DNA of 64,000 nucleotides. Origin: Macrostomum lignano. Taxonomy: Eukaryota. The position numbers and the translations under genes are program-made. Shown here piece after piece: positions 4,140-55,192 of the stretch. Where the stretch lies: assembly GCA_002269645.1 (NCBI GenBank), contig NIVC01000733.1, positions 1 through 64,000 on the forward strand, read 5' to 3'. Position 1 is the stretch's first letter. Each line of letters starts with the position of its first letter. The notes under the pieces are model-generated. The model did not search any database, was not told the origin of the DNA, and saw only the letters and a list, made by a program, of their open reading frames with translations.

Positions 4140-4948
4140 TGTGACGTTGCTAGTTTAAAGTGGTCCCGCAAAAGGGCCGTTGGACTACAAATTTCCTTAC
4201 AATTTCTCATTTAATATTCTCCAATCCTGTATTCTCACGTTTACTTGTAGTAGCGCCCAACGAATCTGTATCAATTGCTAAATCACTCCGTACTTTGTAA
4301 GCCTTGTGTACGGCTGTAGGGTCTCGCGCGATCGATAATTTCTGTTTCTTGTTTTTTCCTCGACAGCCAATGATAACTCTCCGCATATATTATGTTAACC
4401 CTCCTGCGCTCCTTTATTAACCCCGCCTAGCGGCGGGCTGGGGTTTTTTTCACTCCCTTCGCCACTTTCGCTCTTTCGCTCTCTCGTTCTCTCGTCCTCG
4501 TGCCTCCTTATCTCTCGCCACGGCTCCACTCCGTCTGGGCCAGACTGTCTACGCACTCTTGCTACACTGTGTACTGCCACGGGCCGACGCCCAATCTCGC
4601 CGCTTTGTTTGTTTGCCTACTTGTTACTCACAGCCATCACTTGCTACTCGGCTCCATCCCAATTATCATCATCTACTCAACTTCCATCTATACGACTAGA
4701 TTACATCAACCCATTGTTGCAGCCGCCAGTGCCCCATAACGTCATAAGCTTCTGTATTAATATTAAACATTGATAATTATAAACCAGTTGGCGTCTTTTG
4801 TTATCTACCGCCATTGCCAAGTGCTACCGCTACAAAATCTACTCTGCCATTGTTGAGTTCACCATCCTTTTTGGGACTAATAACGTCAGCACTCTCGTCA
4901 AACGGCCCTTTTGAGGGCTATAGCCACTACTACGCCAATAACGTGACA
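4140..4948 (+). mobile_element. 809-bp TG..CA element with 4-bp TSD (CGGG); solo Ty3/Gypsy-type LTR or non-autonomous Ginger-like element, copy 1
   Basis: Begins TGTGACGTT and ends AACGTGACA. CGGG flanks both sides (4136-4139, 4949-4952). It has imperfect ~45-bp terminal inverted repeats. A homologous copy lies at 27055-27883, and CCTTTATTAACCCCGCC is conserved in both. Confidence 0.8.
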
Positions 4949-5016: not shown

Positions 5017-5572
5017 GTATGATCATAGCTATTGGTTTTACTCGGTAGTTCACGCACTTCACGCTCGCACTCGTAATATAGTTTTATGCTTATTTCTCTT
5101 AGATAAGAAGGTGGATAGATCTAAAGATAGTTACCGCGAATTTAAAATAGTTTTACATGTATACGTACAAAAACACCGCTTTTAAGGCTTTGAACTTTCC
5201 GTAACAATGTCCACCAAGCTTGTGTGGTTTTTAATCCGATTCTTCTTATTTTTCTTCCTAGATTCGTCTCCTAAATCCAATGGCATCACATTAATTTCGG
5301 ATTATTCAGTGTTCGAGTGCTGTTGATTGCGACAGTAAAAAAAATTTGTCTGGCTCTCTGACCCTCTTGGTAATCTCTAAATTTGACAAGAGCAAATCTA
5401 ATAATTTGTTATTAGAAATGAGAGCATTTCTCTAAGCACTACGATCGTAGCATAGAACTCAATTTTAAGTACTCGTAATCGACCATTTCCTGAAAAATCT
5501 CAGCACTTGAGACTGTCTAAGTGCTAATAATTAATTCGTGCTAAGTACTTTGAGCTTAATTCTAAATTGCAG
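5017..5572 (+). other. Predicted 5'-UTR intron(s) of the SecA-like gene, with a possible internal UTR exon at 5262-5334
   Basis: Donor CAG|GTATGA at 5017. Strong acceptor TTCTTATTTTTCTTCCTAG ending 5261. Donor ACA|GTAAAA at 5335. Acceptor TTAATTCTAAATTGCAG ending 5572, one base before the ATG at 5574. Confidence 0.5.
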
Positions 5573-5573
5573 A

Positions 5574-8500
5574 ATGGGCAATACTGGAAGCAAACTGAGC
5601 AACAATACTGATGAGCATTGGAGCGTAGCTGCAGAATACAAGGTCGTTGGATGGAGCGCTGGCGATGGCATCATTCATGTGGACCCTTGGAACTCAACAC
5701 ATTATGATTTCAAGGGTTTTCCTGTTAACATCTATTTTAAACACAAGACACACAGTTTATCAGATACGATTAGTGACTCAGATATGAAATCATGGTGCAA
5801 CGGTATCAGAAACAAGGACTGGAAGCTGCATTCACCATCAGAAGGCATCATCCATCTGGAATATAATGGAGGATATGTTGCAAACTACAAATACGAAACC
5901 AGATCGATGTTCGAGGCGAGAATGCACAGAGAACGAGAGCAGAGAATGGAGAGAGAGCGCAGAGGACAAGAGCAGAGAATGGAGAGAGAGCGCCGAGGAC
6001 AAGAGCAGAGAATGGAGAGAGAGCGCAGAGGACAAGAGCAGAGAATGGAGAGAGAGCGCAGAGAAAAAGAGCAGAGAATGGAGAGAGAGCGCAGAGAAAA
6101 AGAGCAGAGAATGGAGAGAGAGCGCCGAGAAAAAGAGCAGAGAATGGAGAGAGAGCGCAGAGAAAAAGTTCAGAGAATGCAAGGGGCGCTACAGCAGCTG
6201 AAGCAGGGTGACAGAGAGCAGTCACTTTTTGATCAAAGGAGGGCGGAACAGCAGATGGCTCGACAAAGTGCGATGCAAACTGAAAACATACAAAAGTGGA
6301 AAAGCTTGAATGCTGAGCGAGACAGGGCTTTGGTGAACTTCAACCATAAAACTAAAGATTTCAGCAGAAGATGCGAGGCGACGAGGCAAGAGAGATCGGC
6401 CAAACACGAGGCGAGTAAAAGGCAAACTGAGAAAGATCGAGCAGAACACTTTGCCAGACTGCAGAAGCAGGCAAGAGACAGAACAGAAAGCGAACAGCTA
6501 TCTTTGGCTGATGAACAGGAGCAGGCAAATGCTATTCGCAAACAGAGACACGATGAGTTTCATCGTCAAAAATTAAAAGTCACCTCAGAAACTAGCGAAA
6601 AATTTAGCAGTCTCAACCAGGAAGCTCAGGAAACAAGAGCTCGTTTGAGAGCTCAGTTTGAAGAGAGAAAAAGTACTTTTCAGGAACAGATGAAGCGAAA
6701 GAAGGAGGAGATGCAGCAGCAAAGCTCGGAGATGCAAGACAGGCTGCAGTTGCAGAAAAATCAGCTGGAAATTGGCAAAGAAGAACTTCACCGCGAAATG
6801 GCTGAAAGGGAGGCTGAGATTGCCCGAAAAATAGAAGAGCAGCGGCGGCATCGAGCGGAGAAGCAACGGGAGTCTGAGAACCTGAAGAAAACAGAGCAGT
6901 TCAAGCGACAAATATTGATAGAGCTGGAGAGAGAGAGAGCCAAAGCTATGCGCAGACAATTTAAGAGTGTTAGCTACTCCATTCAGCACGTTCGTGGGAA
7001 GAGCGCCAAAGGCTATTCTAACCCTGCAGTAAGCGAAGCATCCGAAGTGATGCTCAGAGACCAGCTTGAAGAAAATGTTGAAGATGCTTTGACGAAATTT
7101 CTAGGCAGTCTGTCAGGTGCTATCGAGGATGATTCCAATCAGGAACTGTCAGTAGCAGCTAATGTCAAAACAATTTCTGCAAAGGACGCTTTAGATTTAT
7201 TTAAGCGTGTCTGGAAATCAGAAGGTCATCCATTTGGAAAGCAGCCAACATCTAGCCAATTGTCTCTCCTACAACTATTGGATGAAAAATTCGCTCAACA
7301 GTGTTTAGATGCGGCTAACAAAGTTTTCCGAGAGATCTGCTTTCCGAGTTTAGAACTCGACTTGGTCAGCTATGGTCTGCTGGTTTTTGTCCTGCACAGC
7401 GAAAAATCCCAAGATATCAAGCACGAAGAAGACTTCAGTGCTCTCCGTCAGCAACTCAGCGACACAAGAATTGCACTGGCGCATATGAGAAAGCTCACTA
7501 GTGAAACAGCCTATAATGAGCTCAGTCCTGTCACTGAAAGGCTGCTCCAGCTGCTAGTTGTGGCTGAAGATGTTGTGCGACTTTGGCCGATTCAACAAGA
7601 CCCTGCTGCTGGCTTAAAGAGGCTCAGAGTCGTACTGGCAACGATGCTGAGGCATGCTGGTGTGTCGCAGTATTTGGATGAAAAATCCAACACCGAATGT
7701 GTCGTAGAGCTCATAACATCGATGCAGCATTGGGACCCTGTTAGCATGCTCAAGCTGATGGAATTTATACATACAAGTTGCACTGAGCCCGATCAGGTGA
7801 GAGAATTCGTGAAGATGATGGTGTTGAGCCGCGGCGACCCCAGATCTCTTCCGAGTCCTCGCGAGGCGATTACGGAAACTTATATTGCGAGCCTAAAAAA
7901 AGATCAAGCATCACAGAAAACACTTGACCAGCTTCTCGATGAACTGAAGAAGACAGGGCAGTTCGACGAGGGTCAACTTTCAGAACTTGCTGACGTAGTA
8001 AGAAAAGTTTTCACATATTTTGATTCGTCTGGGTTCGATAAAGCATTGCAGAAACTGAAAATATGGAAACGTGGTAAGGAATCGCCACTGCACAAAATTC
8101 TGATTGATCTCTGTAAGGCAGTGCTGAAATGCAAGGGATATCTCCCAAGACATACACAAGTATTCAGTACTGCAGCCCTCCTAAACGCTTTTAAAAACAA
8201 AACAAGTGGGCAAGTATTACAGATCCTGACTGGTGAAGGTAAATCCTGCATTGTCGCAATGTCTGCTGTAGGATTGGTGCGTCTTGGACAAAAGTCTGTT
8301 GATGTCGTGGCTCCGTCAGAAGTTTTGGCTGCGAGAGACTGTAAGGAATGGAAAGATTTCTATAAAATATGCGATGTTCGAGTTGACTGCAACATTGAGC
8401 ACGAAAATCCTAAAAAATGCTATGAATCGTGCATAGTGTATGGCACAGTCTCTTCTTTCGCGGGCGACACATTGCGGCATGAGTTCCAGTTCAAAGACAT

Positions 8501-11500
8501 CCGCGGCTCACGAGGCTTTGATTCAATAATCGTGGATGAAGTTGACTCTCTGCTGCTGGACCAAGGTGTGCAGCTGACATATCTGGCTCAGGACGCAGGT
8601 GACATGAAAATGCTGGATCCAATTTTCGCTACTATCTTTAGAGCCACTATGGGCTGCCACGTTCTCAACACAGCGCACGGAGGTGAGATGGTGGCAGAGC
8701 AACAAATGACTTTTCTCTACCTCATAAAAGAGTTCGTCTCGTCGGATGAAGAGTTCAGCACTTTGGTCGAGCAACTTGATCTCAAACAGTTAATTAGTTC
8801 AGAGGAGAAACAGAGCTTCTTGGCTCAAAATGCCGAACCAGTGGATTTGTCAAACTTTGATATTAAAAGGACGATTCAGGTTCTTGAAGTTTCTGGAGAA
8901 GTTTTGCAAAATTTTCCATCGTATACAATTTATGCATTTAGAAATGCTGAAATCGAACCAGTGCGGCTTTGCCAAGATAGCTCATTGGATCTTTTAGTCC
9001 AAGATGGTGGAGTCTGCAATTTGCTTTTTGAAAATATCGATGACTTCAAAACACGAAAGAAGGAAGATATCTGGTCGAGAATAGACTACAGTACAACAAT
9101 ACTAGACCCGAAAGACGACACCAAAAAGAAACATGAAGAGGCCCAGCTGCCCATTCCATCGCATTTAAAGCAGTTCATAGATGACATGCTGGATGTCTGG
9201 ATCAACAGTGCCCTCACTGCAGGAGCTCTGCAACCCGGTAGAGACTACCTGCTTCAGGGTGGGGACGCTGTTCCAGTAGACTACAAGCACACAGGAGTGG
9301 TGCAGGAGAACATGAGATGGAGCGATGGGCTGCAGCAGTTTCTGCAGTTAAAACACAGCCTGCAAATGCGGCCTCTAGGATTGGAAACAAACTTCCTGTC
9401 AAACTTGGCCTTCTTCCGTCGATATGGCAAATCCATGTTCGGTGTGTCTGGAACTCTCGGAGAAGAGCATGAGAAAAAGTTCATGCGGGAAACTTACAAA
9501 GTGCAACTGAACTACATTCCTCCGTACAGGGAGCGCCGGCTTGTGGAGAACCCGGGCATTGTGGCAGAAACCAAGTCAGAGTGCATCACGAAAATTTGCC
9601 AACTAGTTACACAGGAGAGAAATCGGCCCAGCTTGATCGTGTGCGAGGATATCAACAGTGCCGACCTCATTTTCGAAGAGGTGGCTCGCCGTTGTCAAGG
9701 AGTCAAGACAAAAAAGTACGTCAAGAATGAGGACACAAAAGATGAACTTCAGGTGGGTCCCGGTGATGTTATTGTGGCCACGAATCTGGCAGGCAGGGGC
9801 ACGGATGTGAAAGTGAGTGACGACGCGGAGACAGCGGGAGGTCTACACGTTCTCGTCACATTCCTGCCCCTGAATCAGCGCGTTGAGGAGCAAGTGTTCG
9901 GCCGCAGTGGTCGCAAGGGCCAGCGGGGTTCAGCGACTTTGCTGCTAAGCAGAGAGGGCCTCAGTGCCTGCTTTTCAGACTGTGACTCTGTCGAAGAAAT
10001 GAAGCAGGTGAGACGAGAGGCCAGCTTGCAGGAACTGAAGAATCATGAGGAGTTCGCGCTGCCGGAAGTTGAGTTCAAGGAGAATCTTTTCAAGTGTATC
10101 AGTCATTTGCTATCGGAGTATTATCATCAGATAAAGAAACCTCCCAGCACTGGTACAGAGCTAGAAAAGCGTTGGTCAGAGACGGACCTAAAATTAAAAA
10201 TGGATCATTTAAAAGAGATTTGGGGCATGCATCTCAAAAAAACACTCTGTCACATTACTGATTTCAGTATAGAGAGAACAGCTCAGTGCATTGGAGAAGT
10301 TGAGAAAATGTTCCAGGAAGCAAAATCTAATGTCGAATCCGAGTGTTCATTGAGTCCTTTTCAGGCACTGAAGTTCGCAGAGAAAAGTGTAAGGCACGAA
10401 GATTTCGAACGAGCCATTGATCTTTACACAAAAGCTATAAATATGAACAGCTCATGGTCGTCTATCGCGTACTACAACAGAGCATACGCAAAAATAATGA
10501 AAGGCAACTGTGATATCAGAGAAGTGATGGATGACTTGGAAGATGCAAAAGCTCGGATTGCAGAAACCTGGCTGGCCCATGCCACGTGGACGGAGCTGTA
10601 CTCTGGCGCAAGAATCCAGCAGGAAAATGCAAGCGATAATGACTGTGAGGAGGAGGCTAAGAAGGAAACACCCAAAGACCAAGCGAATAAACAAGTTAAG
10701 GAAGAAGCCAGCCAAGATGTTCGAAGTGAAACTGCAAACCCTCAGTTCCGTCAATGCATGGCTCGAATAAGGATAATCAGCAATTATAAAACCCAAATAG
10801 AAAAATGCCTGGAAAAGCTGGAAGAGCACAGAAGAGCTGGTGATGAAATCATTGCTGTCAGCACTTGCATTAAGGAGATTGAGAAGGAACCAGACAGCAT
10901 TACACTTGACGAGCTCAAGTCTCTGTACCATCTGGGTCATGTAAGATTTTTTGATGTACAAAAGAAGCCTTCGTATGCGTTAGCAATTTTTGTGGCAATT
11001 TTCGGTGCCTTTGAGATTGCGCTTGGCACTGTGCTGTGTCTTGTTGGCGTGGAGAATGTTGGAATTCATTTTATCAATGAGGGCATTGGTGATATAATGG
11101 CAGGTTTCGTGGGGATGATTCAGGGTGATTTTGATCTAAAATCCTGGCTAAAAAATAAAGCCAAGAATATTGGTGTCAGCCTACTGACTTTTGGATTTGG
11201 AAAAGTCGTCAGCTATCTAAAATCTTCGCAGAAATTCGAAGCTGTTGCGCAAAACGTTAATGCAGCTGGGAGTAAATTCTACACGAAAACCGCGGCAGTA
11301 CTGAACAAAGTGACTGGACAAAAAGCTGTTAAGTTTATTAAGAACATAATGAGCAATCCAATTGTACAGAAAGTGACCGATTACGCGATAAGTGCAGCTC
11401 AAAGGAAACTGCTTGATAAGTTAATTGAAAAGTTAAAGCAAGGCGTCCAAGACGACGTTAAAGAGAAGTGTTCCTCTGAGGCTGAAAGTGGAAAACTTCA

Positions 11501-14500
11501 TGACATTGTTCTCCGACTGACTGCTCCTCTCTGCTTAGTAAAGGACCAGGAGACGAGTAAAATCGATATACATGATTTTTCCACTCTAACTCATTCTCAA
11601 ACCAATAATATTTTACAGGCTCTTACCGCTATAGCACACGAAGCAACAGATGAATTAATGTCTGATGTAGAAAATACGGCCAAATTAATCGAAGCAATAA
11701 GGTCACGATTGGCCGTTCTCAAAGACGAGTTTGCAGAACTCTTCAAGGGTATTCTGTCTTTCGTAAGACTGGCTTCGGTGGCAGTGGACTCGGCAGCAAT
11801 AGCAAAGCATTCTCAAACATTACACAGCCTAGTTGGCAGTACTGTCGAGTGCATGGACAAACGATTGCTCACCAGAGAATGGAAAATAAAATTTGACCAA
11901 ACCATTGACATCCGAAGCGAAAAGCTGCAGAGAAAAGAATGCATCAAACCACTCTGTGAAGCAATTCGAAAAGTGCTGGAGCAGCGCATCATTGAATGCG
12001 TCATTGTAATACTGGAAGAGCACATCCGTAAAAACCTAGATGGCATTGTGGAAAACAGCATTGCACAAGCAAAAAAGTTCGTTGGAAAAACATTTAAAAC
12101 CGCACATAAAGAAAATATATCTAACAAAAACATACCATCCATCAAAAATAAAAATATTGAAAAATCCGAAAAACCTGGAACCAAGAAATTCCTAAAGAAA
12201 ACTAAACTCACTGCTACAGACTCCGGTGTGGAGCTAACTAATGCAGACAAAAAACTAGCGGTCAAGGCTGGCGACTCTGGAGTGAGTGTGGAAACAGCAC
12301 AAAGACATGGCTCTCGGCGTGTCTCACGGATCGGACGGTTCTACAGAAGTGGCCGCGAGCAAGGGCGACAGCAAACTAGCGGTCAAGGCTGGCGACTCTG
12401 GAGTGAGTGTGGCCGCTCAGCACAAAGACATGGCTCTCGGCGTGTCTCACGGATCGGACGGTTCTACAGAAGTGGCCGCGAGCAAGGGCGACAGCAAACT
12501 AGCGGTCAAGGCTGGCGACTCTGGAGTGAGTGTGGCCGCTCAGCACAAAGACATGGCTCTCGGCGTGTCTCACGGATCGGACGGTTCTACAGAAGTGGCC
12601 GCGAGCAAGGGCGACAGCAAACTAGCGGTCAAGGCTGGCGACTCTGGAGTGAGTGTGGCCGCTCAGCACAAAGACATGGCTCTCGGCGTGTCTCACGGAT
12701 CGGACGGTTCTACAGAAGTGGCCGCGAGCAAGGGCGACAGCAAACTAGCGGTCAAGGCTGGCGACTCTGGAGTGAGTGTGGCCGCTCAGCACAAAGACAT
12801 GGCTCTCGGCGTGTCTCACGGATCGGACGGTTCTACAGAAGTGGCCGCGAGCAAGGGCGACAGCAAACTAGCGGTCAAGGCTGGCGACTCTGGAGTGAGT
12901 GTGGCCGCTCAGCACAAAGACATGGCTCTCGGCGTGTCTCACGGATCGGACGGTTCTACAGAAGTGGCCGCGAGCAAGGGCGACAGCAAACTAGCGGTCA
13001 AGGCTGGCGACTCTGGAGTGAGTGTGGCCGCTCAGCACAAAGACATGGCTCTCGGCGTGTCTCACGGATCGGACGGTTCTACAGAAGTGGCCGCGAGCAA
13101 GGGCGACAGCAAACTAGCGGTCAAGGCTGGCGACTCTGGAGTGAGTGTGGCCGCTCAGCACAAAGACATGGCTCTCGGCGTGTCTCACGGATCGGACGGT
13201 TCTACAGAAGTGGCCGCGAGCAAGGGCGACAGCAAACTAGCGGTCAAGGCTGGCGACTCTGGAGTGAGTGTGGCCGCTCAGCACAAAGACATGGCTCTCG
13301 GCGTGTCTCACGGATCGGACGGTTCTACAGAAGTGGCCGCGAGCAAGGGCGACAGCAAACTAGCGGTCAAGGCTGGCGACTCTGGAGTGAGTGTGGCCGC
13401 TCAGCACAAAGACATGGCTCTCGGCGTGTCTCACGGATCGGACGGTTCTACAGAAGTGGCCGCGAGCAAGGGCGACAGCAAACTAGCGGTCAAGGCTGGC
13501 GACTCTGGAGTGAGTGTGGCCGCTCAGCACAAAGACATGGCTCTCGGCGTGTCTCACGGATCGGACGGTTCTACAGAAGTGGCCGCGAGCAAGGGCGACA
13601 GCAAACTAGCGGTCAAGGCTGGCGACTCTGGAGTGAGTGTGGCCGCTCAGCACAAAGACATGGCTCTCGGCGTGTCTCACGGATCGGACGGTTCTACAGA
13701 AGTGGCCGCGAGCAAGGGCGACAGCAAACTAGCGGTCAAGGCTGGCGACTCTGGAGTGAGTGTGGCCGCTCAGCACAAAGACATGGCTCTCGGCGTGTCT
13801 CACGGATCGGACGGTTCTACAGAAGTGGCCGCGAGCAAGGGCGACAGCAAACTAGCGGTCAAGGCTGGCGACTCTGGAGTGAGTGTGGCCGCTCAGCACA
13901 AAGACATGGCTCTCGGCGTGTCTCACGGATCGGACGGTTCTACAGAAGTGGCCGCGAGCAAGGGCGACAGCAAACTAGCGGTCAAGGCTGGCGACTCTGG
14001 AGTGAGTGTGGCCGCTCAGCACAAAGACATGGCTCTCGGCGTGTCTCACGGATCGGACGGTTCTACAGAAGTGGCCGCGAGCAAGGGCGACAGCAAACTA
14101 GCGGTCAAGGCTGGCGACTCTGGAGTGAGTGTGGCCGCTCAGCACAAAGACATGGCTCTCGGCGTGTCTCACGGATCGGACGGTTCTACAGAAGTGGCCG
14201 CGAGCAAGGGCGACAGCAAACTAGCGGTCAAGGCTGGCGACTCTGGAGTGAGTGTGGCCGCTCAGCACAAAGACATGGCTCTCGGCGTGTCTCACGGATC
14301 GGACGGTTCTACAGAAGTGGCCGCGAGCAAGGGCGACAGCAAACTAGCGGTCAAGGCTGGCGACTCTGGAGTGAGTGTGGCCGCTCAGCACAAAGACATG
14401 GCTCTCGGCGTGTCTCACGGATCGGACGGTTCTACAGAAGTGGCCGCGAGCAAGGGCGACAGCAAACTAGCGGTCAAGGCTGGCGACTCTGGAGTGAGTG

Positions 14501-17500
14501 TGGCCGCTCAGCACAAAGACATGGCTCTCGGCGTGTCTCACGGATCGGACGGTTCTACAGAAGTGGCCGCGAGCAAGGGCGACAGCAAACTAGCGGTCAA
14601 GGCTGGCGACTCTGGAGTGAGTGTGGCCGCTCAGCACAAAGACATGGCTCTCGGCGTGTCTCACGGATCGGACGGTTCTACAGAAGTGGCCGCGAGCAAG
14701 GGCGACAGCAAACTAGCGGTCAAGGCTGGCGACTCTGGAGTGAGTGTGGCCGCTCAGCACAAAGACATGGCTCTCGGCGTGTCTCACGGATCGGACGGTT
14801 CTACAGAAGTGGCCGCGAGCAAGGGCGACAGCAAACTAGCGGTCAAGGCTGGCGACTCTGGAGTGAGTGTGGCCGCTCAGCACAAAGACATGGCTCTCGG
14901 CGTGTCTCACGGATCGGACGGTTCTACAGAAGTGGCCGCGAGCAAGGGCGACAGCAAACTAGCGGTCAAGGCTGGCGACTCTGGAGTGAGTGTGGCCGCT
15001 CAGCACAAAGACATGGCTCTCGGCGTGTCTCACGGATCGGACGGTTCTACAGAAGTGGCCGCGAGCAAGGGCGACAGCAAACTAGCGGTCAAGGCTGGCG
15101 ACTCTGGAGTGAGTGTGGCCGCTCAGCACAAAGACATGGCTCTCGGCGTGTCTCACGGATCGGACGGTTCTACAGAAGTGGCCGCGAGCAAGGGCGACAG
15201 CAAACTAGCGGTCAAGGCTGGCGACTCTGGAGTGAGTGTGGCCGCTCAGCACAAAGACATGGCTCTCGGCGTGTCTCACGGATCGGACGGTTCTACAGAA
15301 GTGGCCGCGAGCAAGGGCGACAGCAAACTAGCGGTCAAGGCTGGCGACTCTGGAGTGAGTGTGGCCGCTCAGCACAAAGACATGGCTCTCGGCGTGTCTC
15401 ACGGATCGGACGGTTCTACAGAAGTGGCCGCGAGCAAGGGCGACAGCAAACTAGCGGTCAAGGCTGGCGACTCTGGAGTGAGTGTGGCCGCTCAGCACAA
15501 AGACATGGCTCTCGGCGTGTCTCACGGATCGGACGGTTCTACAGAAGTGGCCGCGAGCAAGGGCGACAGCAAACTAGCGGTCAAGGCTGGCGACTCTGGA
15601 GTGAGTGTGGCCGCTCAGCACAAAGACATGGCTCTCGGCGTGTCTCACGGATCGGACGGTTCTACAGAAGTGGCCGCGAGCAAGGGCGACAGCAAACTAG
15701 CGGTCAAGGCTGGCGACTCTGGAGTGAGTGTGGCCGCTCAGCACAAAGACATGGCTCTCGGCGTGTCTCACGGATCGGACGGTTCTACAGAAGTGGCCGC
15801 GAGCAAGGGCGACAGCAAACTAGCGGTCAAGGCTGGCGACTCTGGAGTGAGTGTGGCCGCTCAGCACAAAGACATGGCTCTCGGCGTGTCTCACGGATCG
15901 GACGGTTCTACAGAAGTGGCCGCGAGCAAGGGCGACAGCAAACTAGCGGTCAAGGCTGGCGACTCTGGAGTGAGTGTGGCCGCTCAGCACAAAGACATGG
16001 CTCTCGGCGTGTCTCACGGATCGGACGGTTCTACAGAAGTGGCCGCGAGCAAGGGCGACAGCAAACTAGCGGTCAAGGCTGGCGACTCTGGAGTGAGTGT
16101 GGCCGCTCAGCACAAAGACATGGCTCTCGGCGTGTCTCACGGATCGGACGGTTCTACAGAAGTGGCCGCGAGCAAGGGCGACAGCAAACTAGCGGTCAAG
16201 GCTGGCGACTCTGGAGTGAGTGTGGCCGCTCAGCACAAAGACATGGCTCTCGGCGTGTCTCACGGATCGGACGGTTCTACAGAAGTGGCCGCGAGCAAGG
16301 GCGACAGCAAACTAGCGGTCAAGGCTGGCGACTCTGGAGTGAGTGTGGCCGCTCAGCACAAAGACATGGCTCTCGGCGTGTCTCACGGATCGGACGGTTC
16401 TACAGAAGTGGCCGCGAGCAAGGGCGACAGCAAACTAGCGGTCAAGGCTGGCGACTCTGGAGTGAGTGTGGCCGCTCAGCACAAAGACATGGCTCTCGGC
16501 GTGTCTCACGGATCGGACGGTTCTACAGAAGTGGCCGCGAGCAAGGGCGACAGCAAACTAGCGGTCAAGGCTGGCGACTCTGGAGTGAGTGTGGCCGCTC
16601 AGCACAAAGACATGGCTCTCGGCGTGTCTCACGGATCGGACGGTTCTACAGAAGTGGCCGCGAGCAAGGGCGACAGCAAACTAGCGGTCAAGGCTGGCGA
16701 CTCTGGAGTGAGTGTGGCCGCTCAGCACAAAGACATGGCTCTCGGCGTGTCTCACGGATCGGACGGTTCTACAGAAGTGGCCGCGAGCAAGGGCGACAGC
16801 AAACTAGCGGTCAAGGCTGGCGACTCTGGAGTGAGTGTGGCCGCTCAGCACAAAGACATGGCTCTCGGCGTGTCTCACGGATCGGACGGTTCTACAGAAG
16901 TGGCCGCGAGCAAGGGCGACAGCAAACTAGCGGTCAAGGCTGGCGACTCTGGAGTGAGTGTGGCCGCTCAGCACAAAGACATGGCTCTCGGCGTGTCTCA
17001 CGGATCGGACGGTTCTACAGAAGTGGCCGCGAGCAAGGGCGACAGCAAACTAGCGGTCAAGGCTGGCGACTCTGGAGTGAGTGTGGCCGCTCAGCACAAA
17101 GACATGGCTCTCGGCGTGTCTCACGGATCGGACGGTTCTACAGAAGTGGCCGCGAGCAAGGGCGACAGCAAACTAGCGGTCAAGGCTGGCGACTCTGGAG
17201 TGAGTGTGGCCGCTCAGCACAAAGACATGGCTCTCGGCGTGTCTCACGGATCGGACGGTTCTACAGAAGTGGCCGCGAGCAAGGGCGACAGCAAACTAGC
17301 GGTCAAGGCTGGCGACTCTGGAGTGAGTGTGGCCGCTCAGCACAAAGACATGGCTCTCGGCGTGTCTCACGGATCGGACGGTTCTACAGAAGTGGCCGCG
17401 AGCAAGGGCGACAGCAAACTAGCGGTCAAGGCTGGCGACTCTGGAGTGAGTGTGGCCGCTCAGCACAAAGACATGGCTCTCGGCGTGTCTCACGGATCGG

Positions 17501-20500
17501 ACGGTTCTACAGAAGTGGCCGCGAGCAAGGGCGACAGCAAACTAGCGGTCAAGGCTGGCGACTCTGGAGTGAGTGTGGCCGCTCAGCACAAAGACATGGC
17601 TCTCGGCGTGTCTCACGGATCGGACGGTTCTACAGAAGTGGCCGCGAGCAAGGGCGACAGCAAACTAGCGGTCAAGGCTGGCGACTCTGGAGTGAGTGTG
17701 GCCGCTCAGCACAAAGACATGGCTCTCGGCGTGTCTCACGGATCGGACGGTTCTACAGAAGTGGCCGCGAGCAAGGGCGACAGCAAACTAGCGGTCAAGG
17801 CTGGCGACTCTGGAGTGAGTGTGGCCGCTCAGCACAAAGACATGGCTCTCGGCGTGTCTCACGGATCGGACGGTTCTACAGAAGTGGCCGCGAGCAAGGG
17901 CGACAGCAAACTAGCGGTCAAGGCTGGCGACTCTGGAGTGAGTGTGGCCGCTCAGCACAAAGACATGGCTCTCGGCGTGTCTCACGGATCGGACGGTTCT
18001 ACAGAAGTGGCCGCGAGCAAGGGCGACAGCAAACTAGCGGTCAAGGCTGGCGACTCTGGAGTGAGTGTGGCCGCTCAGCACAAAGACATGGCTCTCGGCG
18101 TGTCTCACGGATCGGACGGTTCTACAGAAGTGGCCGCGAGCAAGGGCGACAGCAAACTAGCGGTCAAGGCTGGCGACTCTGGAGTGAGTGTGGCCGCTCA
18201 GCACAAAGACATGGCTCTCGGCGTGTCTCACGGATCGGACGGTTCTACAGAAGTGGCCGCGAGCAAGGGCGACAGCAAACTAGCGGTCAAGGCTGGCGAC
18301 TCTGGAGTGAGTGTGGCCGCTCAGCACAAAGACATGGCTCTCGGCGTGTCTCACGGATCGGACGGTTCTACAGAAGTGGCCGCGAGCAAGGGCGACAGCA
18401 AACTAGCGGTCAAGGCTGGCGACTCTGGAGTGAGTGTGGCCGCTCAGCACAAAGACATGGCTCTCGGCGTGTCTCACGGATCGGACGGTTCTACAGAAGT
18501 GGCCGCGAGCAAGGGCGACAGCAAACTAGCGGTCAAGGCTGGCGACTCTGGAGTGAGTGTGGCCGCTCAGCACAAAGACATGGCTCTGGGCGTGTCTCTC
18601 GGCGTGTCTCACGGATCGGACGGTTCTACAGAAGTGGCCGCGAGCAAGGGCGACAGCAAACTAGCGGTCAAGGCTGGCGACTCTGGAGTGAGTGTGGCCG
18701 CTCAGCACAAAGACATGGCTCTCGGCGTGTCTCACGGATCGGACGGTTCTACAGAAGTGGCCGCGAGCAAGGGCGACAGCAAACTAGCGGTCAAGGCTGG
18801 CGACTCTGGAGTGAGTGTGGCCGCTCAGCACAAAGACATGGCTCTCGGCGTGTCTCACGGATCGGACGGTTCTACAGAAGTGGCCGCGAGCAAGGGCGAC
18901 AGCAAACTAGCGGTCAAGGCTGGCGACTCTGGAGTGAGTGTGGCCGCTCAGCACAAAGACATGGCTCTCGGCGTGTCTCACGGATCGGACGGTTCTACAG
19001 AAGTGGCCGCGAGCAAGGGCGACAGCAAACTAGCGGTCAAGGCTGGCGACTCTGGAGTGAGTGTGGCCGCTCAGCACAAAGACATGGCTCTCGGCGTGTC
19101 TCACGGATCGGACGGTTCTACAGAAGTGGCCGCGAGCAAGGGCGACAGCAAACTAGCGGTCAAGGCTGGCGACTCTGGAGTGAGTGTGGCCGCTCAGCAC
19201 AAAGACATGGCTCTCGGCGTGTCTCACGGATCGGACGGTTCTACAGAAGTGGCCGCGAGCAAGGGCGACAGCAAACTAGCGGTCAAGGCTGGCGACTCTG
19301 GAGTGAGTGTGGCCGCTCAGCACAAAGACATGGCTCTCGGCGTGTCTCACGGATCGGACGGTTCTACAGAAGTGGCCGCGAGCAAGGGCGACAGCAAACT
19401 AGCGGTCAAGGCTGGCGACTCTGGAGTGAGTGTGGCCGCTCAGCACAAAGACATGGCTCTCGGCGTGTCTCACGGATCGGACGGTTCTACAGAAGTGGCC
19501 GCGAGCAAGGGCGACAGCAAACTAGCGGTCAAGGCTGGCGACTCTGGAGTGAGTGTGGCCGCTCAGCACAAAGACATGGCTCTCGGCGTGTCTCACGGAT
19601 CGGACGGTTCTACAGAAGTGGCCGCGAGCAAGGGCGACAGCAAACTAGCGGTCAAGGCTGGCGACTCTGGAGTGAGTGTGGCCGCTCAGCACAAAGACAT
19701 GGCTCTCGGCGTGTCTCACGGATCGGACGGTTCTACAGAAGTGGCCGCGAGCAAGGGCGACAGCAAACTAGCGGTCAAGGCTGGCGACTCTGGAGTGAGT
19801 GTGGCCGCTCAGCACAAAGACATGGCTCTCGGCGTGTCTCACGGATCGGACGGTTCTACAGAAGTGGCCGCGAGCAAGGGCGACAGCAAACTAGCGGTCA
19901 AGGCTGGCGACTCTGGAGTGAGTGTGGCCGCTCAGCACAAAGACATGGCTCTCGGCGTGTCTCACGGATCGGACGGTTCTACAGAAGTGGCCGCGAGCAA
20001 GGGCGACAGCAAACTAGCGGTCAAGGCTGGCGACTCTGGAGTGAGTGTGGCCGCTCAGCACAAAGACATGGCTCTCGGCGTGTCTCACGGATCGGACGGT
20101 TCTACAGAAGTGGCCGCGAGCAAGGGCGACAGCAAACTAGCGGTCAAGGCTGGCGACTCTGGAGTGAGTGTGGCCGCTCAGCACAAAGACATGGCTCTCG
20201 GCGTGTCTCACGGATCGGACGGTTCTACAGAAGTAGCCGCGAGCAAGGGCGACAGCAAACTAGCGGTCAAGGCTGGCGACTCTGGAGTGAGTGTGGCCGC
20301 TCAGCACAAAGACATGGCTCTCGGCGTGTCTCACGGATCGGACGGTTCTACAGAAGTAGCCGCGAGCAAGGGCGACAGCAAACTAGCGGTCAAGGCTGGC
20401 GACTCTGGAGTGAGTGTGGCCGCTCAGCACAAAGACATGGCTCTCGGCGTGTCTCACGGATCGGACGGTTCTACAGAAGTAGCCGCGAGCAAGGGCGACA

Positions 20501-22868: not shown

Positions 22869-23971
22869 GTGAGTGTGGCCGCTCAGCACAAAGACATGGC
22901 TCTCGGCGTGTCTCACGGATCGGACGGTTCTACAGAAGTGGCCGCGAGCAAGGGCGACAGCAAACTAGCGGTCAAGGCTGGCGACTCTGGAGTGAGTGTG
23001 GCCGCTCAGCACAAAGACATGGCTCTCGGCGTGTCTCACGGATCGGACGGTTCTACAGAAGTGGCCGCGAGCAAGGGCGACAGCAAACTAGCGGTCAAGG
23101 CTGGCGACTCTGGAGTGAGTGTGGCCGCTCAGCACAAAGACATGGCTCTCGGCGTGTCTCACGGATCGGACGGTTCTACAGAAGTAGCCGCGAGCAAGGG
23201 CGACAGCAAACTAGCGGTCAAGGCTGGCGACTCTGGAGTGAGTGTGGCCGCTCAGCACAAAGACATGGCTCTCGGCGTGTCTCACGGATCGGACGGTTCT
23301 ACAGAAGTGGCCGCGAGCAAGGGCGACAGCAAACTAGCGGTCAAGGCTGGCGACTCTGGAGTGAGTGTGGCCGCTCAGCACAAAGACATGGCTCTCGGCG
23401 TGTCTCACGGATCGGACGGTTCTACAGAAGTAGCCGCGAGCAAGGGCGACAGCAAACTAGCGGTCAAGGCTGGCGACTCTGGAGTGAGTGTGGCCGCTCA
23501 GCACAAAGACATGGCTCTCGGCGTGTCTCACGGATCGGACGGTTCTACAGAAGTAGCCGCGAGCAAGGGCGACAGCAAACTAGCGGTCAAGGCTGGCGAC
23601 TCTGGAGTGAGTGTGGCCGCTCAGCACAAAGACATGGCTCTCGGCGTGTCTCACGGATCGGACGGTTCTACAGAAGTGGCCGCGAGCAAGGGCGACAGCA
23701 AACTAGCGGTCAAGGCTGGCGACTCTGAGTGAGTGTGGCCGCTCAGCACAAAGACATGGCTCTCGGCGTGTCTCACGGATCGGACGGTTCTACAGAAGTG
23801 GCCGCGAGCAAGGGCGACAGCAAACTAGCGGTCAAGGCTGGCGACTCTGGAGTGAGTGTGGCCGCTCAGCACAAAGACATGGCTCTCGGCGTGTCTCACG
23901 GATCGGACGGTTCTACAGAAGTAGCCGCGAGCAAGGGCGACAGCAAACTAGCGGTCAAGGCTGGCGACTCT
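12252..23971 (+). repeat. 123-bp tandem array, ~95 copies, almost invariant, open in two + frames
   Basis: The 123-nt period was verified (e.g. 12304 to 12427). The only deviations seen are a 2-nt-shorter first junction (12292-12294), a 12-bp duplication at 18586-18609, a recurrent G>A (first at 20235, 17 units) and 1-bp deletions at ~22867 and ~23727. Confidence 0.98.
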
Positions 23972-23977: not shown

Positions 23978-25297
23978 CTAAGGACTACCATTTTGACGTG
24001 TAATGACGGTAGTATTTCGGCTAAACGATTTAATCGAAAAGGACATTTTTCAGTGTCGTCCTTTGACTTCTGTGTGGTTGAATACTTTTGCAGACTTCAG
24101 TCTAAGCGTTCGTTTGAAATGCAGTGTAGTAAAAAAGTGTTGAAATTAGTATTTATAGTTTCTAGTATAGCAAGTAAATCATTTAGGTCATTTTATCCAC
24201 CTACATGTACTTGTATCGTTTGAGTGAAAAACTTTTACAAGAATACAAGTACCCACTAAATTGATGCAACTTCGTTTAGGAGTTATTTGGCATTGATTTG
24301 GGGCTACTAGTTTTTATTTTATTTATAAAATAATATTAACTATTCGCATTGTAATCGTGTAATTCGTGGTTTTTCTATGGGTAAATTATGGATTTTCTAT
24401 GGGTAAATTACCTTTTGAAGGAATGCAGCGACAGGTACATGTCGCTAACTTTTTATGCTATCTGCTAATAACATTTTGAGCTAAAGCTTTCCCTAAATTG
24501 CCTGACGTCAAAGTATGCAAATGAGTAAGCTTAATGATCTATAGTTAGTGGAGCGAATAATTGTGAGCGAAAACAAGAACCCTGAGCCCTTTTCGGCTAA
24601 ATTTTAAAATTATTATGATCATTGTATTGTTGGACAAATTTTAGTGAAAGCACTTCTGCTCATTTTGCATGTACATATATGTGAATGTACGACTCATATC
24701 GCACATATCCAGAGAATTTGGAATATTGCTAATGGTGAGTAATTCAGTTGAAGATAATGAACTGCTTTGCCTATTTCTTTACTATTTCTGGTTTAACATT
24801 GTTAATTTTTTAAATGGCTTTAAAATCATTTGATTTTAAACACACTACTACATGTATATGTTACTGTACCTTCGTAGCTTTTTTGTCGAACGTATATCGA
24901 ACGCACCAAAAGCCGAATTACAATCTTTATTTTATTTTAAGAGGAGTATATAGCTCGTATGTATTAAATAAGTTATCGGAAAAAGTCTGAGATATGATGT
25001 GAACAGCAAATTTACTGATGATTATGTACATAGCCGCTATAGGCTACACTCGGCGACTTAAAATAAAGGCTCATTCCCATTGCAATCAAATTCAACCAAC
25101 CAAATAGTACGATCAATGTACAAATGAACCAAATTTGATGTACAAGTCGCGTTATCAAACGAAATTGGACCAGATTAGATGGTGTTTTGAATGAACGAAG
25201 TTAGGGCCGCGCTGGACACTCCTGTGTGAGTTTGGCCTGCTGTGCATATGGCTGCCGTACGTATCCGAGCGCTTGCATGTGTGCCTGGTCGGGGGGT

Positions 25298-25301
<4 letters not shown>

Positions 25302-25359
<58 letters not shown>

Positions 25360-25381
25360 CTAGCGTCTGTCTGTCTGTCTG
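25302..25381. repeat. (TCTG)n microsatellite
   Basis: Direct reading. Confidence 0.95.
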
Positions 25382-27054: not shown

Positions 27055-27883
27055 TGTCACGTTATTGCGTAGTGGCTAGGACCCTTAAAAGGGCCGTTTG
27101 ACGAGAATCGTCGTAAGTCGTTGTAGTCCCAAAATGAATCGGAGTCAATTCTTGCAAAACAGATTGTGTAGCGGAGCACTTGGCGTATAAGGGCAGGAAA
27201 CTGCCGTAGTTAATTTATTGTTGAGATCAATATTAGAACTGGTTTAATGTCAATACATAACTTATTGCGCTTTGGGACACTGGCGGCTGCAACAATAGTT
27301 TTGAAGGTAATTTAGAATGATAAAGTCGAGTAGCAGACGAAGGATACAATGGTGACGCAACGTGGTGGGTGATGGCGATGAGCACAGTGGAAGCAGTGAG
27401 TAGCAAGTAGACGGGCAGATAAGTAGCGGCGAGAATGGCGTTAGCCGTGGCAGTACACAGTGGAGTAACGGTGTGTAAACAGGCGGGCCCAGACAGAGGA
27501 GCCGTGGCGATCGAGATAAGGAGGCTCGAGGCAGCCAGGCGAGAGAAGGAAAACGAGACGAAAACACAAGGGCCGCAAGAGAAGACCCCCCCCCAGGCCG
27601 CCGCCCGGCGGGGGTTAATAAAGGGGCGCAGAAGGGTTAGCATAAAACACGGAGAGTTTTCATTGGCTGGCGGGAGAACTTGAAATTATCGATCGTGCTA
27701 GATTTTACAGACGAACGCAAGGTTTACCAAATACACAGTGAATTAGCAATTGATACAGATTAGTTGCACGCTACTACAAGTAAACGTTAAAATAAACTAT
27801 TGGAGAAATTTAAGTGAGAAATTGCAAGGGAAACTACAGTCCAACGGCCCTTTTGCGGGACCACTTTTAACAGCAACGTCACA
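27055..27883 (-). mobile_element. 829-bp TG..CA element with 4-bp TSD (ACTT); copy 2 of the 4140-4948 family, opposite orientation
   Basis: TGTCACGTT...AACGTCACA flanked by ACTT (27051-27054, 27884-27887). The reverse complement aligns with copy 1 along most of its length, diverged (roughly 75-80% by eye in the first 200 bp). Confidence 0.8.
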
Positions 27884-31157: not shown

Positions 31158-31569
31158 ACATATAAGATCTTTTTTGTCAAACACTAGCACACATTTGAAC
31201 ATCTCTTCTATAACCATATGCATAGTTATTTATAGGAATAAGAATAACTATATTTATTCAAGTATTATACATATACCTACTTTATTTTTATTCAAAGCTT
31301 TTTATTTTGTATTCAACTTGTCAGTGAAATTCACTATTATAATTGATACAACAAATTATATATTTAATAACCTAGTGTTAAACCAAGAAATCATTGACAT
31401 ACTTAGCGTTTTATTGAAACAATTCCAGTTTTTGCAAAACTATTGCATTTTGGCATAGCTGTTAGACAGTATGATGCTAATGAATTTCAAAATCAAAATG
31501 TTAGCATTACAGTAAACAAAAATGCTACTATTCAAATAGAAATACACTTTTGTTTTATCTTACTTGTAG

Positions 31570-31697
31570 GTTATGCCAATGAAGTTGGTGAAGCATTTCG
31601 GATTCAAGTCCATGTGAACTGGGTTCGCTTCTCCTATGTGGTTGCATCGGGCTATGTGGCTGCTGACACTGCACACAAAACTCAGCTTGAGTATCAG
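31570..31697 (+). CDS. MTFP1: MTFP1 exon 2
   Basis: (G)YANEVGEAFRIQVHVNWVRFSYVVASGYVAADTAHKTQLEYQ contains the conserved YANEVGEAFR. Acceptor TTGTAG, donor CAG|GTAATA, phases 1 to 0. Confidence 0.95.
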
Positions 31698-31809
31698 GTA
31701 ATAATACTTAAAGAGCTAATAGTTAATCTACTTTGAAGCTAAACTTTATAAATCCCCATGATAATTAAAAATCATTCCTTATTTCCTGTGATTCCAGTCC
31801 CAATTTCAC

Positions 31810-33190
31810 GATCCTCAACCCTTAATCCAAAGAATTCTCAACCCTTAATCCCCATGATCATCAACCCTTAATCCCCATGGTTCTCAACCCTTAATCCCCA
31901 TGACCCTCAACTCAACTCTTAATCCCCATGATAATCAACCATTAATCCCCATGATAATCAACCCTTAATCCCCATGATCATCAACCCTTAATCCCCATGG
32001 TTCTCAACCCTTAATCCCCATGACCCTCAACTCAACTCTTAATCCCCATGATAATCAACCATTAATCCCCATGATAATCAACCATTAATCCCAATGATAA
32101 TCAACCCTTGATCCCCATGATCCTCAAACCCTTAATCCCATGATAATCAACCCTTAATCACCATGATCCTCAACCCTTAATCTTCATGACCCTCAACCCT
32201 TAATCCCCATGATCCTCAACCCTTAATCCTCATGACCCTCAACCATTAATCCCCATGATAATCAACCATTAATCCCCATGATAATCAACCATTAATCCCC
32301 ATGATAATCAACCATTAATCCCCATGATAATCAACCCTTGATCCCCATGATCCTCAAACCCTTAATCCCATGATAATCAACCCTTAATCCCCATGACCCT
32401 CAACCCTTAATCCTCATGACCCTCAACCCTTAATCCCCATGACCCTCAACCCTTAATCCCCATGATCCTCAACCCTTAATCCCCATGATCTTCAACTCTT
32501 AATCCCCATGACCCTCAACCCTTAATCCCCATGATCCTCAACCCTTAATCCTCATGACCCTCAACCATTAATCCCCATGATCATCAACCATTAATCCCCA
32601 TGATAATCAACCATTAATCCCCATGATAATCAACCATTAATCCCCATGATCCTCAACCCTTAATCCCCATGATCTTCAACTCTTAATCCCCATGACCCTC
32701 AACCCTTAATCCCCATGATCCTCAACCCTTAATCCTCATGACCCTCAACCCTTAATCTCCATGATCTTCAACCCTTAATCCCCATGATCCTCAACCCTTA
32801 ATCCTCATGACCCTCAACCCTTAATCCCCATGACCCTCAACCCTTAATCCCCATGATCCTCAACCCTTAATCCTCATGACCCTCAACCCTTAATCCCCAT
32901 GATCCTCAACCCTTAATCCCCATGATCCTCAACCCTTAATCCTCATGACCCTCAACCCTTAATCTCCATGATCTTCAACCCTTAATCCCCATGACCCTCA
33001 ACCCTTAATCCCCATGATCCTCAACCCTTAATCCCCATGATCCTCAACCCTTAATCCCCATGACCCTCAGCCCTTAATCCCCATGATCCTCAACCCTTAA
33101 TCCCCATGACCCTCAACCCTTAATCCCCATGACCCTCAACCCTTAATCCCCATGACCCTCAACTCCTAATCCCCAAGGTCCTCAACCCTT
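31810..33190. repeat. 23-bp minisatellite (AACCCTTAATCCCCATGATCCTC)n, ~60 copies, filling MTFP1 intron 2
   Basis: Direct reading. Confidence 0.95.
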
Positions 33191-33260
33191 CCCCTATTCT
33201 TTTTTTTTCTCACCAAACCGTGCGTCTTATTGATCCAAACCCAACCCAACCCACTCGCAG

Positions 33261-53302: not shown

Positions 53303-53926
<624 letters not shown>

Positions 53927-54772: not shown

Positions 54773-55192
<420 letters not shown>

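Follow-up and report, generated by a model that had tools for sequence, protein, structure and literature searches.

Organisation of the locus and of the predicted protein

The 64,000-nucleotide stretch of Macrostomum lignano DNA analysed here (contig NIVC01000733.1 of assembly GCA_002269645.1, positions 1 to 64,000; referred to below as the window) carries on its forward strand a gene built around a SecA-type ATPase, a motor fold of bacterial type, in an animal genome; animals are not known to have a SecA. The gene lies in an open reading frame (ORF) that runs from 5538 to 22868, with an in-frame stop upstream of 5538, and its first ATG, at 5574, opens the reading MGNTGSK, confirming the MGNTGS start described in an earlier note on this DNA. 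The continuous ORF, the collinear alignment with homologues and a paralogue modelled as a single exon together indicate that positions 5574-12290 form the intron-free, single-exon body of a Macrostomum nuclear gene, as the note had claimed for this 6.7-kb stretch, with a predicted protein of at least 2,239 amino acids (aa). Position 12290, which had been taken as the coding end, has no stop; the frame stays open to 22868 through an array of 123-nt repeats.

The centre of the protein (aa 781-1470; 7914..9983, + strand) is a SecA-type motor made up of NBD1, an insert and NBD2, in which all ATPase motifs are intact. Five of these motifs occur in order and are invariant across relatives: TGEGKS (aa 886-891; 8229-8246), DEVDS (aa 988-992; 8535-8549), SGTLG (aa 1292-1296; 9447-9461), TNLAGRGTD (aa 1403-1411; 9780-9806) and QVFGRSGRKG (aa 1440-1449; 9891-9920). 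A Pfam scan of 5574-12290 returned SecA_DEAD (E=1.4e-23, aa 814-1299, interrupted by a large insert), together with P-loop_SecA, DEAD and Helicase_C, and a sequence search of the PDB with the motor returned SecA and SecA2 only (best E=1.7e-32). An AlphaFold 2 (AF2) model of aa 690-1720 (predicted local distance difference test, pLDDT, 79; predicted template modelling score, pTM, 0.72) was compared with the PDB using Foldseek; the top 36 matches were all SecA or SecA2 (E 8e-26 to 1e-13, ~950 aligned columns), followed by UvrB, DinG, MDA5 and XPD at E~4e-7 or worse. Alignment of profiles with hhalign matched the motor to residues 96-671 of canonical SecA (probability 100%, E=4e-59, 554 columns). 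The ordered SecA motifs reported in the earlier note are confirmed. In the profile-profile alignment the family insert (aa ~1029-1189; 8658-9140; ~161 aa, alpha/beta) falls exactly at the position of the SecA preprotein cross-linking domain (PPXD), and in the AF2 model the helices that follow the motor (aa 1471-1590; 9984..10343), one of 48 residues and two more, lie at the position of the SecA scaffold. PF07516 (SecA_SW) and PF02810 (SEC-C) were found neither in the Macrostomum protein nor in any of the 40 relatives scanned, but occur in the canonical SecAs that these searches retrieved. By its domain content the Macrostomum protein is therefore a SecA-type motor, yet without the wing domain and the zinc tail it is no canonical SecA.

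Downstream of the motor, the TPR-like unit and the Gly-rich hydrophobic double segment (~10975-11130) that had been noticed earlier were both recovered. The TPR domain (aa ~1595-1680; 10356..10613) has about three repeats, a weak Pfam TPR match (aa 1599-1657) and a confident AF2 fold (pLDDT 85-94), and its core, AYYNRAYAK (10467-10493), contains the nearly invariant residues Y1634, N1635 and A1637. Foldseek comparison of the C-terminal model with the PDB gave local TPR matches only, to CHIP, p67phox and RPAP3, and the sequence matches (PP5, TOM70, STIP1, SGT and Hip) were marginal, with E 0.004 or worse. As regards the features of a carboxylate clamp, the TPR fold and an NRA motif are present, and the first-repeat GN of the family consensus is EK in Macrostomum. 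A small alpha/beta subdomain follows (aa ~1730-1797, ending ...ELKSLYHLGHVRFFDVQKKP; 10761..10964; pLDDT 82-92), which is conserved in family alignments. The mean pLDDT of the AF2 model of aa 1560-2239 is 59: the TPR domain and the alpha/beta subdomain are modelled with confidence, and the rest, outside the hairpin discussed below, is helical at low confidence.

The hairpin module (aa 1798-1885; 10965..11228) consists of helix 1 (aa 1801-1825; 10974-11048), a three-residue turn, helix 2 with invariant E, G and D residues (aa 1829-1851; 11058-11126) and a third Gly-rich segment (aa 1865-1879; 11166-11210). Its first part, aa 1798-1835, is the sole strongly hydrophobic stretch of the protein (Kyte-Doolittle 2.35). 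The family consensus of the module, KKPKF.W.AL.VF.LG..QV.AG..L.....G....GMGLISEGVSD.I.G..GMITG.F.W..WAISKA.SIG.SL.T.G.GK., is followed by a Lys/Ala/Ser/Thr-rich stretch and does not vary at its E, G, D, W and K positions from bacteria to vertebrates (alignment A6; also I). Given these invariant residues, the hairpin is, to judge from the alignments, more than a passive anchor. The tail beyond it (aa 1886-2226; 11229..12251) is helical and partly Lys-rich, with no known domain.

The predicted start codon and the MGNTGSK reading (5574..5594) fit the N-myristoylation consensus (Gly2, Ser6, Lys7). MG starts were found in 9 of the 29 listed relatives, all of them long forms (for example MGNSPS, MGGGYS, MGLWYS and MGGSCS), several with Ser at position 6, and the start sequences of the family are consistent with a conserved putative N-myristoylation. 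Membrane association of the Macrostomum protein, and with it the anchoring suggested in the earlier note, is plausible from the MGxxxS start, the MG starts of relatives and the conserved hydrophobic hairpin. The domain that begins with this start (aa 1-125; 5574..5948) appears to be restricted to Macrostomum, since the deposited protein P0001 is its sole match among 179 family proteins, and the Pfam scan gave no match to it. It is followed by a charged, E/R/Q/K-rich helical rod (aa 126-470; 5949..6983) of 345 aa, 48% of which are charged, with no proline and 5% Leu. Fourier power at a period of 3.5 residues is 0.05 in this region, the second lowest among six periods, and because a 3.5-residue heptad periodicity is absent, the rod looks like an ER/K single alpha-helix more than the ~350-aa coiled coil for which it had been taken. 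An in-frame repeat of 33 nt x 7.7 (5927-6179) within it encodes EQRMERERR(G/E)(Q/K). Between the rod and the motor lies a helical region (aa 471-780; 6984..7913) that is partly conserved in the family (W720, K782, E790).

The closest database protein is M. lignano BOX15_Mlig033771g1, at 94% identity. A second copy of the gene was found at locus L001 (GCA_002269645.1, treated as an independent M. lignano assembly), where the DNA is 96% identical and the gene model has a single exon; L001 has in common with the window the upstream and downstream flanks and then the 123-nt array, in 57 copies. There is no second gene copy within the window. On the 3' side of the gene, as described in the earlier note, lie two interrupted genes, MTP18/MTFP1 with at least two exons (31407-33587, + strand) and a Musashi-type RRM gene (53303-58724, - strand) with exons at 53.3 and 58.4 kb, in which one RRM is split by an intron of ~5 kb. 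Because these intron-split animal genes flank it and the 96%-identical L001 copy has the same array, the gene is, on this sequence context, genuinely animal, and the idea that the block is a chimeric contaminant can be set aside.

Comparison of the window copy with L001 gave a ratio of non-synonymous to synonymous substitution rates (dN/dS) of 0.33 overall, which indicates that the frame is under purifying selection, with values of 0.24 in the motor, 0.17 in the scaffold/TPR part, 0.34 in the hairpin, 0.36 in aa 1886-2090 and 0.65 in aa 2094-2239. Divergence between the copies is mosaic, with dS of 0.39 in the hairpin core, 0.21 after the hairpin and 0.06 in the motor at similar dN/dS (~0.3), a pattern suggestive of gene conversion in the motor or of recombination with a more distantly related copy. 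Positive selection on the hairpin was rejected, as its higher divergence reflects an older divergence (dS 0.39) at a dN/dS of 0.34; instead of the diversification between paralogues that the earlier note had envisaged, the hairpins of the two Macrostomum copies show purifying selection. The copies also differ in the length of the rod, because L001 lacks 7 of the 33-nt units and is shorter by 231 nt there, and in the deposited L001 sequence a 7-nt deletion at aa 2091 (L001 ~16040, corresponding to window 11843) causes P0001 to end at 2,019 aa.

The array downstream of the gene body (12252-23971, + strand) comprises 95.2 copies of a 123-nt unit, with ~61% GC and 99% identity between units. Of the three forward frames, two (A and B) are free of stops within the unit, which makes the 17-kb ORF a mechanical consequence of the repeat. 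All units are 123 nt long except the first (121), one at 18523 (135) and those at 22840 and 23700 (122 each); the 122-nt units shift the frame again, and frame A stops two codons beyond the array. Every unit contains the splice-donor-like sequence GGA|GTGAGT, and the array may represent coding sequence, 3' UTR or a satellite. The last unique residues before the array (..KKLAVKAGDSGVSV) already resemble the end of the frame A repeat unit (AAQHKDMALGVSHGSDGSTEVAASKGDSKLAVKAGDSGVSV), and in L001 the gene enters the array in phase with frame A; in the window, a 2-nt loss at ~12290 leads into the Arg-rich frame B. One constrained and one released copy would give the dN/dS of 0.65 seen in the tail. 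Since searches with the tail and the frame A repeat peptide found no matching database protein, translation of the array is without independent support, and we regard translation of the 41-aa repeats as doubtful.

An inverted repeat around the gene (4140-4948 against 27055-27883; 72% identity, ~810-860 nt) was considered as the ends of a transposon that mobilised it and rejected: because the upstream arm is missing at the corresponding site in L001, it represents the insertion of a dispersed element of ~810 bp. Elsewhere in the window, blocks of tandem repeats at ~34.5-36.5, 47.7-50.3, 51.6-53.2 and 63.4-64.0 kb give rise to spurious long ORFs in several frames, and a (TGTC)n microsatellite occurs at three places (25297-25381, ~42.3-42.7 kb and ~54.8-55.2 kb).

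The cassette family in bacteria and animals

Database searches with the two halves of the protein show that the SecA-type ATPase, the scaffold-like helices, the three-repeat TPR domain, the alpha/beta subdomain and the Gly-rich hairpin form a cassette of ~1,100 aa, which defines an unnamed family of predicted proteins. This is a distinct, undescribed SecA-like cassette family rather than SecA proper. In the Macrostomum protein, the TPR domain is followed by the family pattern KKP.F...LG..Q...G...G.GLI.EG.SD.I.G..GM..G.F.W..W...K, collinear downstream of the motor. When aa 1721-2239, on the hairpin side, were used as a HMMER query against 1.84 billion cluster representatives, 152 representatives matched, most of which also have the motor, the rest being mostly fragments. 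A profile of the motor found dozens of teleost proteins annotated as ‘protein translocase subunit SecA-like’, including some from Danio rerio. Against the family motor profile the window protein scored 839 bits, bacterial relatives 290-700 bits and canonical SecA ~190-240 bits. A Cardinium protein scored 340 bits, against ~220-240 bits for canonical SecA in that search, and its gene adjoins the ATP synthase operon on a bacterial contig.

A scan for the motor in bacteria, using one genome per prokaryotic species, yielded 64 loci at 24-43% identity (31-43% in the majority); in most, the alignment covers nearly the whole 631-aa motor. Most of these loci belong to intracellular lineages, namely Francisellaceae, Tisiphia, Rickettsia and other Rickettsiaceae, Orientia chuto and Midichloriaceae, together with Wolbachia wCon, Holosporaceae, Coxiellaceae, Legionella and other Legionellales, and Parachlamydiales and Chlamydiae. 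A hidden Markov model (HMM) of the hairpin matched downstream of the motor, at E<1e-5, in 36 of 61 motor-bearing bacterial ORFs of 1,000-3,900 aa, among them those of a Bacteroidetes metagenome-assembled genome (MAG; 6e-42), a member of the Rickettsiaceae (1.5e-33), Wolbachia (8e-20) and Orientia chuto (1e-11). Two peptide patterns of the hairpin, searched for in 185,579 prokaryotic genomes, had returned no relative, which the 36 ORFs found by the HMM identify as a false negative of the pattern method. In a Rickettsiaceae protein, SecA_DEAD, PP_bind, NBD2, TPR and hairpin have the order and spacing seen in Macrostomum, and for a Rickettsiaceae relative a single BLASTP alignment spans aa 1194-1939 of the Macrostomum protein (28.6% identity, E=6e-75). 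Besides the giant proteins of obligate or facultative intracellular bacteria, the cassette is collinear in fish, frog, ant and rotifer proteins, with the eel protein P0010 aligning to Macrostomum aa 837-2171. True Legionella species and the short teleost forms have the motor without the hairpin. The eel protein has aa 214-2010 within one 5.4-kb exon of a 22.7-kb gene, and because its cassette is therefore also encoded by a single exon, the giant core exon appears to be a trait of the family. In three members (P0002, P0006 and P0122), a second, partial NBD1-like segment was observed upstream of the main motor.

The earlier note had proposed placing the motor in a SecA phylogeny. In neighbour-joining trees the cassette family stands apart from canonical SecA, and the Macrostomum protein joins those of fish and frog with 95% bootstrap support and does not group with any sampled bacterium; supports along the backbone are 5-45%. 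An ant protein (P0148, Harpegnathos saltator LOC112588266) groups with Wolbachia wCon (L031:3-11531) at 98% bootstrap and is 41% identical to it over 3,770 aa. This protein reflects either an acquisition separate from that of the flatworm/vertebrate lineage or symbiont-derived sequence in the ant assembly. Because the whole motor-TPR-hairpin cassette is common to the giant proteins of obligate intracellular bacteria, a horizontal-transfer link between such bacteria and animals is supported at the level of the family, on sequence comparison; the horizontal acquisition suggested in the earlier note stands in this form, and retroposition, the other origin named there, is not needed as an explanation. 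The groupings would support horizontal exchange on at least two occasions, the neighbour-joining trees fixing neither direction nor number. Two apparently bacterial members were rejected as such: P0258, a fragment from a Thiodiazotropha MAG, groups with frog and eel at 100%, and L022, from a Stappiaceae MAG, groups with the ENA sequence P0017 inside a clade of named animals, so that both are probably mis-binned. More generally, P0258, L022, L015 (Methanobrevibacter MAG) and L025 (Saccharibacteria) come from short contigs assigned to unlikely organisms and are probably mis-binned eukaryotic or symbiont DNA.

Some relatives carry enzyme-like domains beyond the hairpin. An AID/APOBEC-like deaminase motif follows the hairpin in P0018 and P0030, both of which end in it, and a Scabin-like ADP-ribosyltransferase follows it in P0161. 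In 20 of 102 long members (for example P0017, P0031, P0035, P0055 and P0066), a GH[YF]..DG..NC[LM][FY].A motif, which resembles the catalytic-Cys region of OTU proteases and is not matched by Pfam OTU, lies ~320 aa after the hairpin. ApoL, ankyrin, HEAT and ILEI domains occur in single relatives. This layout of a constant chassis with a variable C-terminal enzyme resembles, by analogy, that of polymorphic toxins and effectors, and a conflict or effector context is hinted at by the deaminase and ADP-ribosyltransferase heads. The immune or toxin effector role proposed in the earlier note thus finds a hint in the relatives; the Macrostomum protein itself has none of the deaminase, ADP-ribosyltransferase or OTU-like heads.

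In the literature on animal SecA-like function, Mlig033771 and SecA_DEAD we found no functional study of the cassette family. ‘SecA-like helicase-related domains’ have been described in Amoebophilus effectors (Zhang et al. 2012, PMC3482391), SecA-like ATPases in giant actinobacterial toxins (PMC8195603), and divergent SecA_DEAD and SecA_PP_bind domains beside transmembrane segments in giant proteins of Omnitrophota and Actinobacteria (bioRxiv 10.1101/2023.11.21.568195); in these papers the SecA-like modules are proposed to export their own giant carrier proteins (PMC8195603, PMC3482391, bioRxiv 10.1101/2023.11.21.568195). Secondary SecA_DEAD proteins near type I secretion genes are also on record. 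A Cardinium ‘DEAD box RNA helicase’ (Penz et al., PMC3486910) was considered and appears to be an ordinary helicase rather than a member of the family.

Possible mechanisms of the cassette

These features suggest to us, tentatively and with somewhat less than even confidence, that the cassette is a self-contained delivery or insertion chassis independent of SecYEG, anchored to a membrane and driven by ATP, which handles polypeptide at its own hairpin. The protein would sit on the cytosolic face of a membrane, anchored there by myristoylation of its N terminus and by the hairpin, in which the turn is so short that both flanks would lie on the same side. As in SecA, the SecA-like motor would use ATP to take hold of a polypeptide and thread it; this would most likely be the protein's own C-terminal part or a client passed on via the TPR domain, and would be moved into or across the membrane at the hairpin. 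Such a chassis may originally have belonged to effectors or toxins of intracellular bacteria and have entered animals by horizontal transfer, where its use would probably lie in host-microbe conflict; the Macrostomum copy would then carry its helical tail and 41-aa repeat array in place of an enzymatic C-terminal head. Beyond an intact SecA-type ATPase joined to a conserved hydrophobic hairpin, all of this mechanism is what we infer.

Several observations weigh against this delivery mechanism. Pfam gives no SecA_PP_bind in the Macrostomum protein, the domain being found in 12 of 40 relatives (9/26 and 3/14) and in two bacterial relatives, and some bacteria in the family have a much shorter insert at the PPXD position. 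The profile-profile alignment ends at NBD2, with no sequence homology to the SecA scaffold, two-helix finger or wing beyond it; since the helices after NBD2 are without sequence homology to the scaffold and finger, threading of polypeptide is assumed from the fold. The hairpin itself is poorly modelled, as two helices with a pLDDT of ~55, and a hairpin of two helices could conduct polypeptide only as an oligomer. No head can be recognised in the Macrostomum copy, of which the C-terminus is undefined as well, and the deaminase, ADP-ribosyltransferase and OTU-like heads of relatives could act in the cytosol without translocation. The mechanism as a whole would thus stand on sequence and predicted structure. 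A bolder version of it, which we consider improbable, would have the cassette as an autonomous translocation device without SecYEG or Sec61, in which the motor acts in cis with an oligomeric hairpin conduit and its own cargo; it would have evolved in effectors of intracellular bacteria and been captured more than once by animals, one lineage leading to flatworms and vertebrates and another passing from Wolbachia-like bacteria to ants, and would push enzymatic heads (deaminase, ADP-ribosyltransferase, protease-like) across membranes in host-microbe conflict.

Part of the same evidence can be read with nothing crossing the membrane at all. The hairpin and myristate would then only tether an ATPase that unfolds, extracts or hands over client proteins at the surface of an organelle, with the TPR domain recruiting Hsp70/Hsp90 or the client. 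The best TPR matches by sequence or fold are indeed to chaperone-binding proteins (PP5, TOM70, STIP1, SGT, Hip, CHIP), and because the motor is retained in short teleost and Legionella forms (~1,000-1,350 aa) that have no hairpin, it can evidently work without one. Set against this are the weakness of the TPR matches (E 0.004 or worse), the alteration in Macrostomum of the first-repeat GN of the family consensus, and conservation of the hairpin, including its invariant acidic residues, far beyond the needs of a passive anchor; we consider remodelling of this kind unlikely, if a serious contender. That same conservation, of an amphipathic/hydrophobic hairpin with invariant E and D residues, would also suit a pore former, in which the motor controls insertion or oligomerisation of the hairpin and a target membrane is permeabilised as an immune or toxin activity, a suggestion made in the earlier note. 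The family extends to intracellular bacteria, one relative has an ApoL domain, and weak, scattered Pfam matches to two-transmembrane effector or toxin families were seen (DUF4225 in 7 of 15 animal modules, best E 0.0026; SLATT_fungal, E 0.0013). The DUF4225 matches, however, all lie well below the Pfam threshold, and as the window's own module and ten bacterial modules gave none, we rejected the DUF4225/SLATT link as compositional. No Pfam family matched the hairpin at threshold in the window's, animal or bacterial modules scanned, the hairpin profile had no match among PDB sequences, and Foldseek gave no significant match to a solved pore former (best E 0.02, on a low-confidence model), which neither supports nor excludes the pore-forming idea. 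The hairpin is moreover under purifying and not diversifying selection between the two Macrostomum copies (dN/dS 0.34). We think pore formation quite improbable.

The fold of the motor itself admits a further alternative, that of a membrane-associated nucleic-acid helicase or sensor, whose SF2-type motor would unwind RNA or DNA, for example of viruses or bacteria, and in some relatives feed the fused AID/APOBEC-like deaminase. The NBDs of SecA have the DEAD/helicase fold, in agreement with the Pfam DEAD and Helicase_C matches, the Foldseek matches that rank next after SecA are UvrB, DinG, MDA5 and XPD, and a deaminase ends two relatives. The motor, however, matches SecA more strongly than it matches any helicase, by some 20 orders of magnitude, it has SecA-specific motifs and the PPXD-position insert, and the other heads (ADP-ribosyltransferase and OTU-like) act on proteins, so that we hold a helicase to be slightly more improbable still. 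Finally, the gene might be an artefact or a dead relic, be it a bacterial contaminant, a chimeric assembly or a transferred gene decaying without function. Both copies do have a frame problem near the 3' end (the 2-nt loss in the window and the 7-nt deletion at aa 2091 in L001), and neither the tail nor the repeat peptide has a match among database proteins. This is nevertheless very improbable given the intron-containing animal genes on its flank, the same locus structure in the L001 assembly, the intact 2,239-aa frame with a dN/dS of 0.33 and all ATPase motifs conserved, and the grouping with vertebrate proteins (95% bootstrap) and no bacterium.

Whichever of these mechanisms applies, flatworms, fish, frogs and ants have a SecA-type motor in a nuclear gene that is conserved and under selection. 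The motor is embedded in a common cassette, next to a TPR domain and a hairpin that has kept its sequence from Rickettsiales and Chlamydiae through to vertebrates (the short forms being without the hairpin). This pattern points to a shared, unstudied machine where hosts and microbes meet inside the cell, and to repeated exchange of genes between symbionts and their hosts. Should it be true that the motor moves polypeptide at its own hairpin, the cassette would embody a principle of translocation independent of Sec channels. Both zebrafish and M. lignano, which are experimentally tractable, carry family members. Even on a conservative reading, the analysis supplies dozens of database entries labelled ‘protein translocase subunit SecA-like’ with a name, an architecture and an origin.

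Comparison with known systems

With canonical SecA and SecA2 the Macrostomum protein has in common the DEAD-type NBD1-NBD2 motor, including TGEGK, DEVDS, TN(L/M)AGRGTD and GR(S/T)GR.G, and with canonical SecA also the insert at the PPXD position and a long helix after NBD2, at 23% identity at the profile level. It lacks the first ~95 residues of SecA, the wing domain and the SEC-C zinc tail, and adds a putative myristoylation signal, the ER/K-like rod, the TPR domain, the hydrophobic hairpin and a long tail. Furthermore, whereas SecA uses SecYEG, the Macrostomum protein is encoded in an animal nucleus, where no such partner exists: animals have Sec61, not SecYEG.

The giant proteins of Omnitrophota and Actinobacteria offer a likeness of theme, in that their SecA-type motor, without wing or scaffold, is joined in cis with membrane segments and effector domains; they are far larger (some exceed 30,000 aa, the largest reaching 85,804 aa), contain numerous transmembrane segments and belong to bacteria that are free-living or predatory. 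DUF4225 (PF13988) is a toxin domain of the antibacterial type VI secretion system that causes lysis from the periplasm (PMC9765294). We take the resemblance of the hairpin to this toxin to be compositional, and the two are not demonstrably related.

Closer likenesses lie within the family. The vertebrate and other animal relatives, from teleosts including Danio rerio, Anguilla, sturgeon, Rhinoderma, Brienomyrus, Harpegnathos and Didymodactylos, are 27-33% identical to the Macrostomum protein. The long animal forms (eel, frog, Brienomyrus) have in common with it the motor, the TPR domain, the hairpin and a helical region thereafter, and many begin with MG; many long vertebrate and other animal forms carry the OTU-like Cys motif, which Macrostomum does not. 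The short teleost forms (~1,190 aa) are without the hairpin, and the N-terminal domain, the ER/K-like rod and the 123-nt array are Macrostomum's own. The giant SecA-like proteins of intracellular bacteria, including Bacteroidetes of the Cardinium type, differ in lying on bacterial chromosomes, in their N-terminal regions and tails, and in an often shorter insert at the PPXD position. Identity over the 631-aa motor is 33-43%, which equals the closeness of the animal relatives to one another, and these bacterial proteins contain the whole motor-TPR-hairpin cassette in the same order and with the same spacing.

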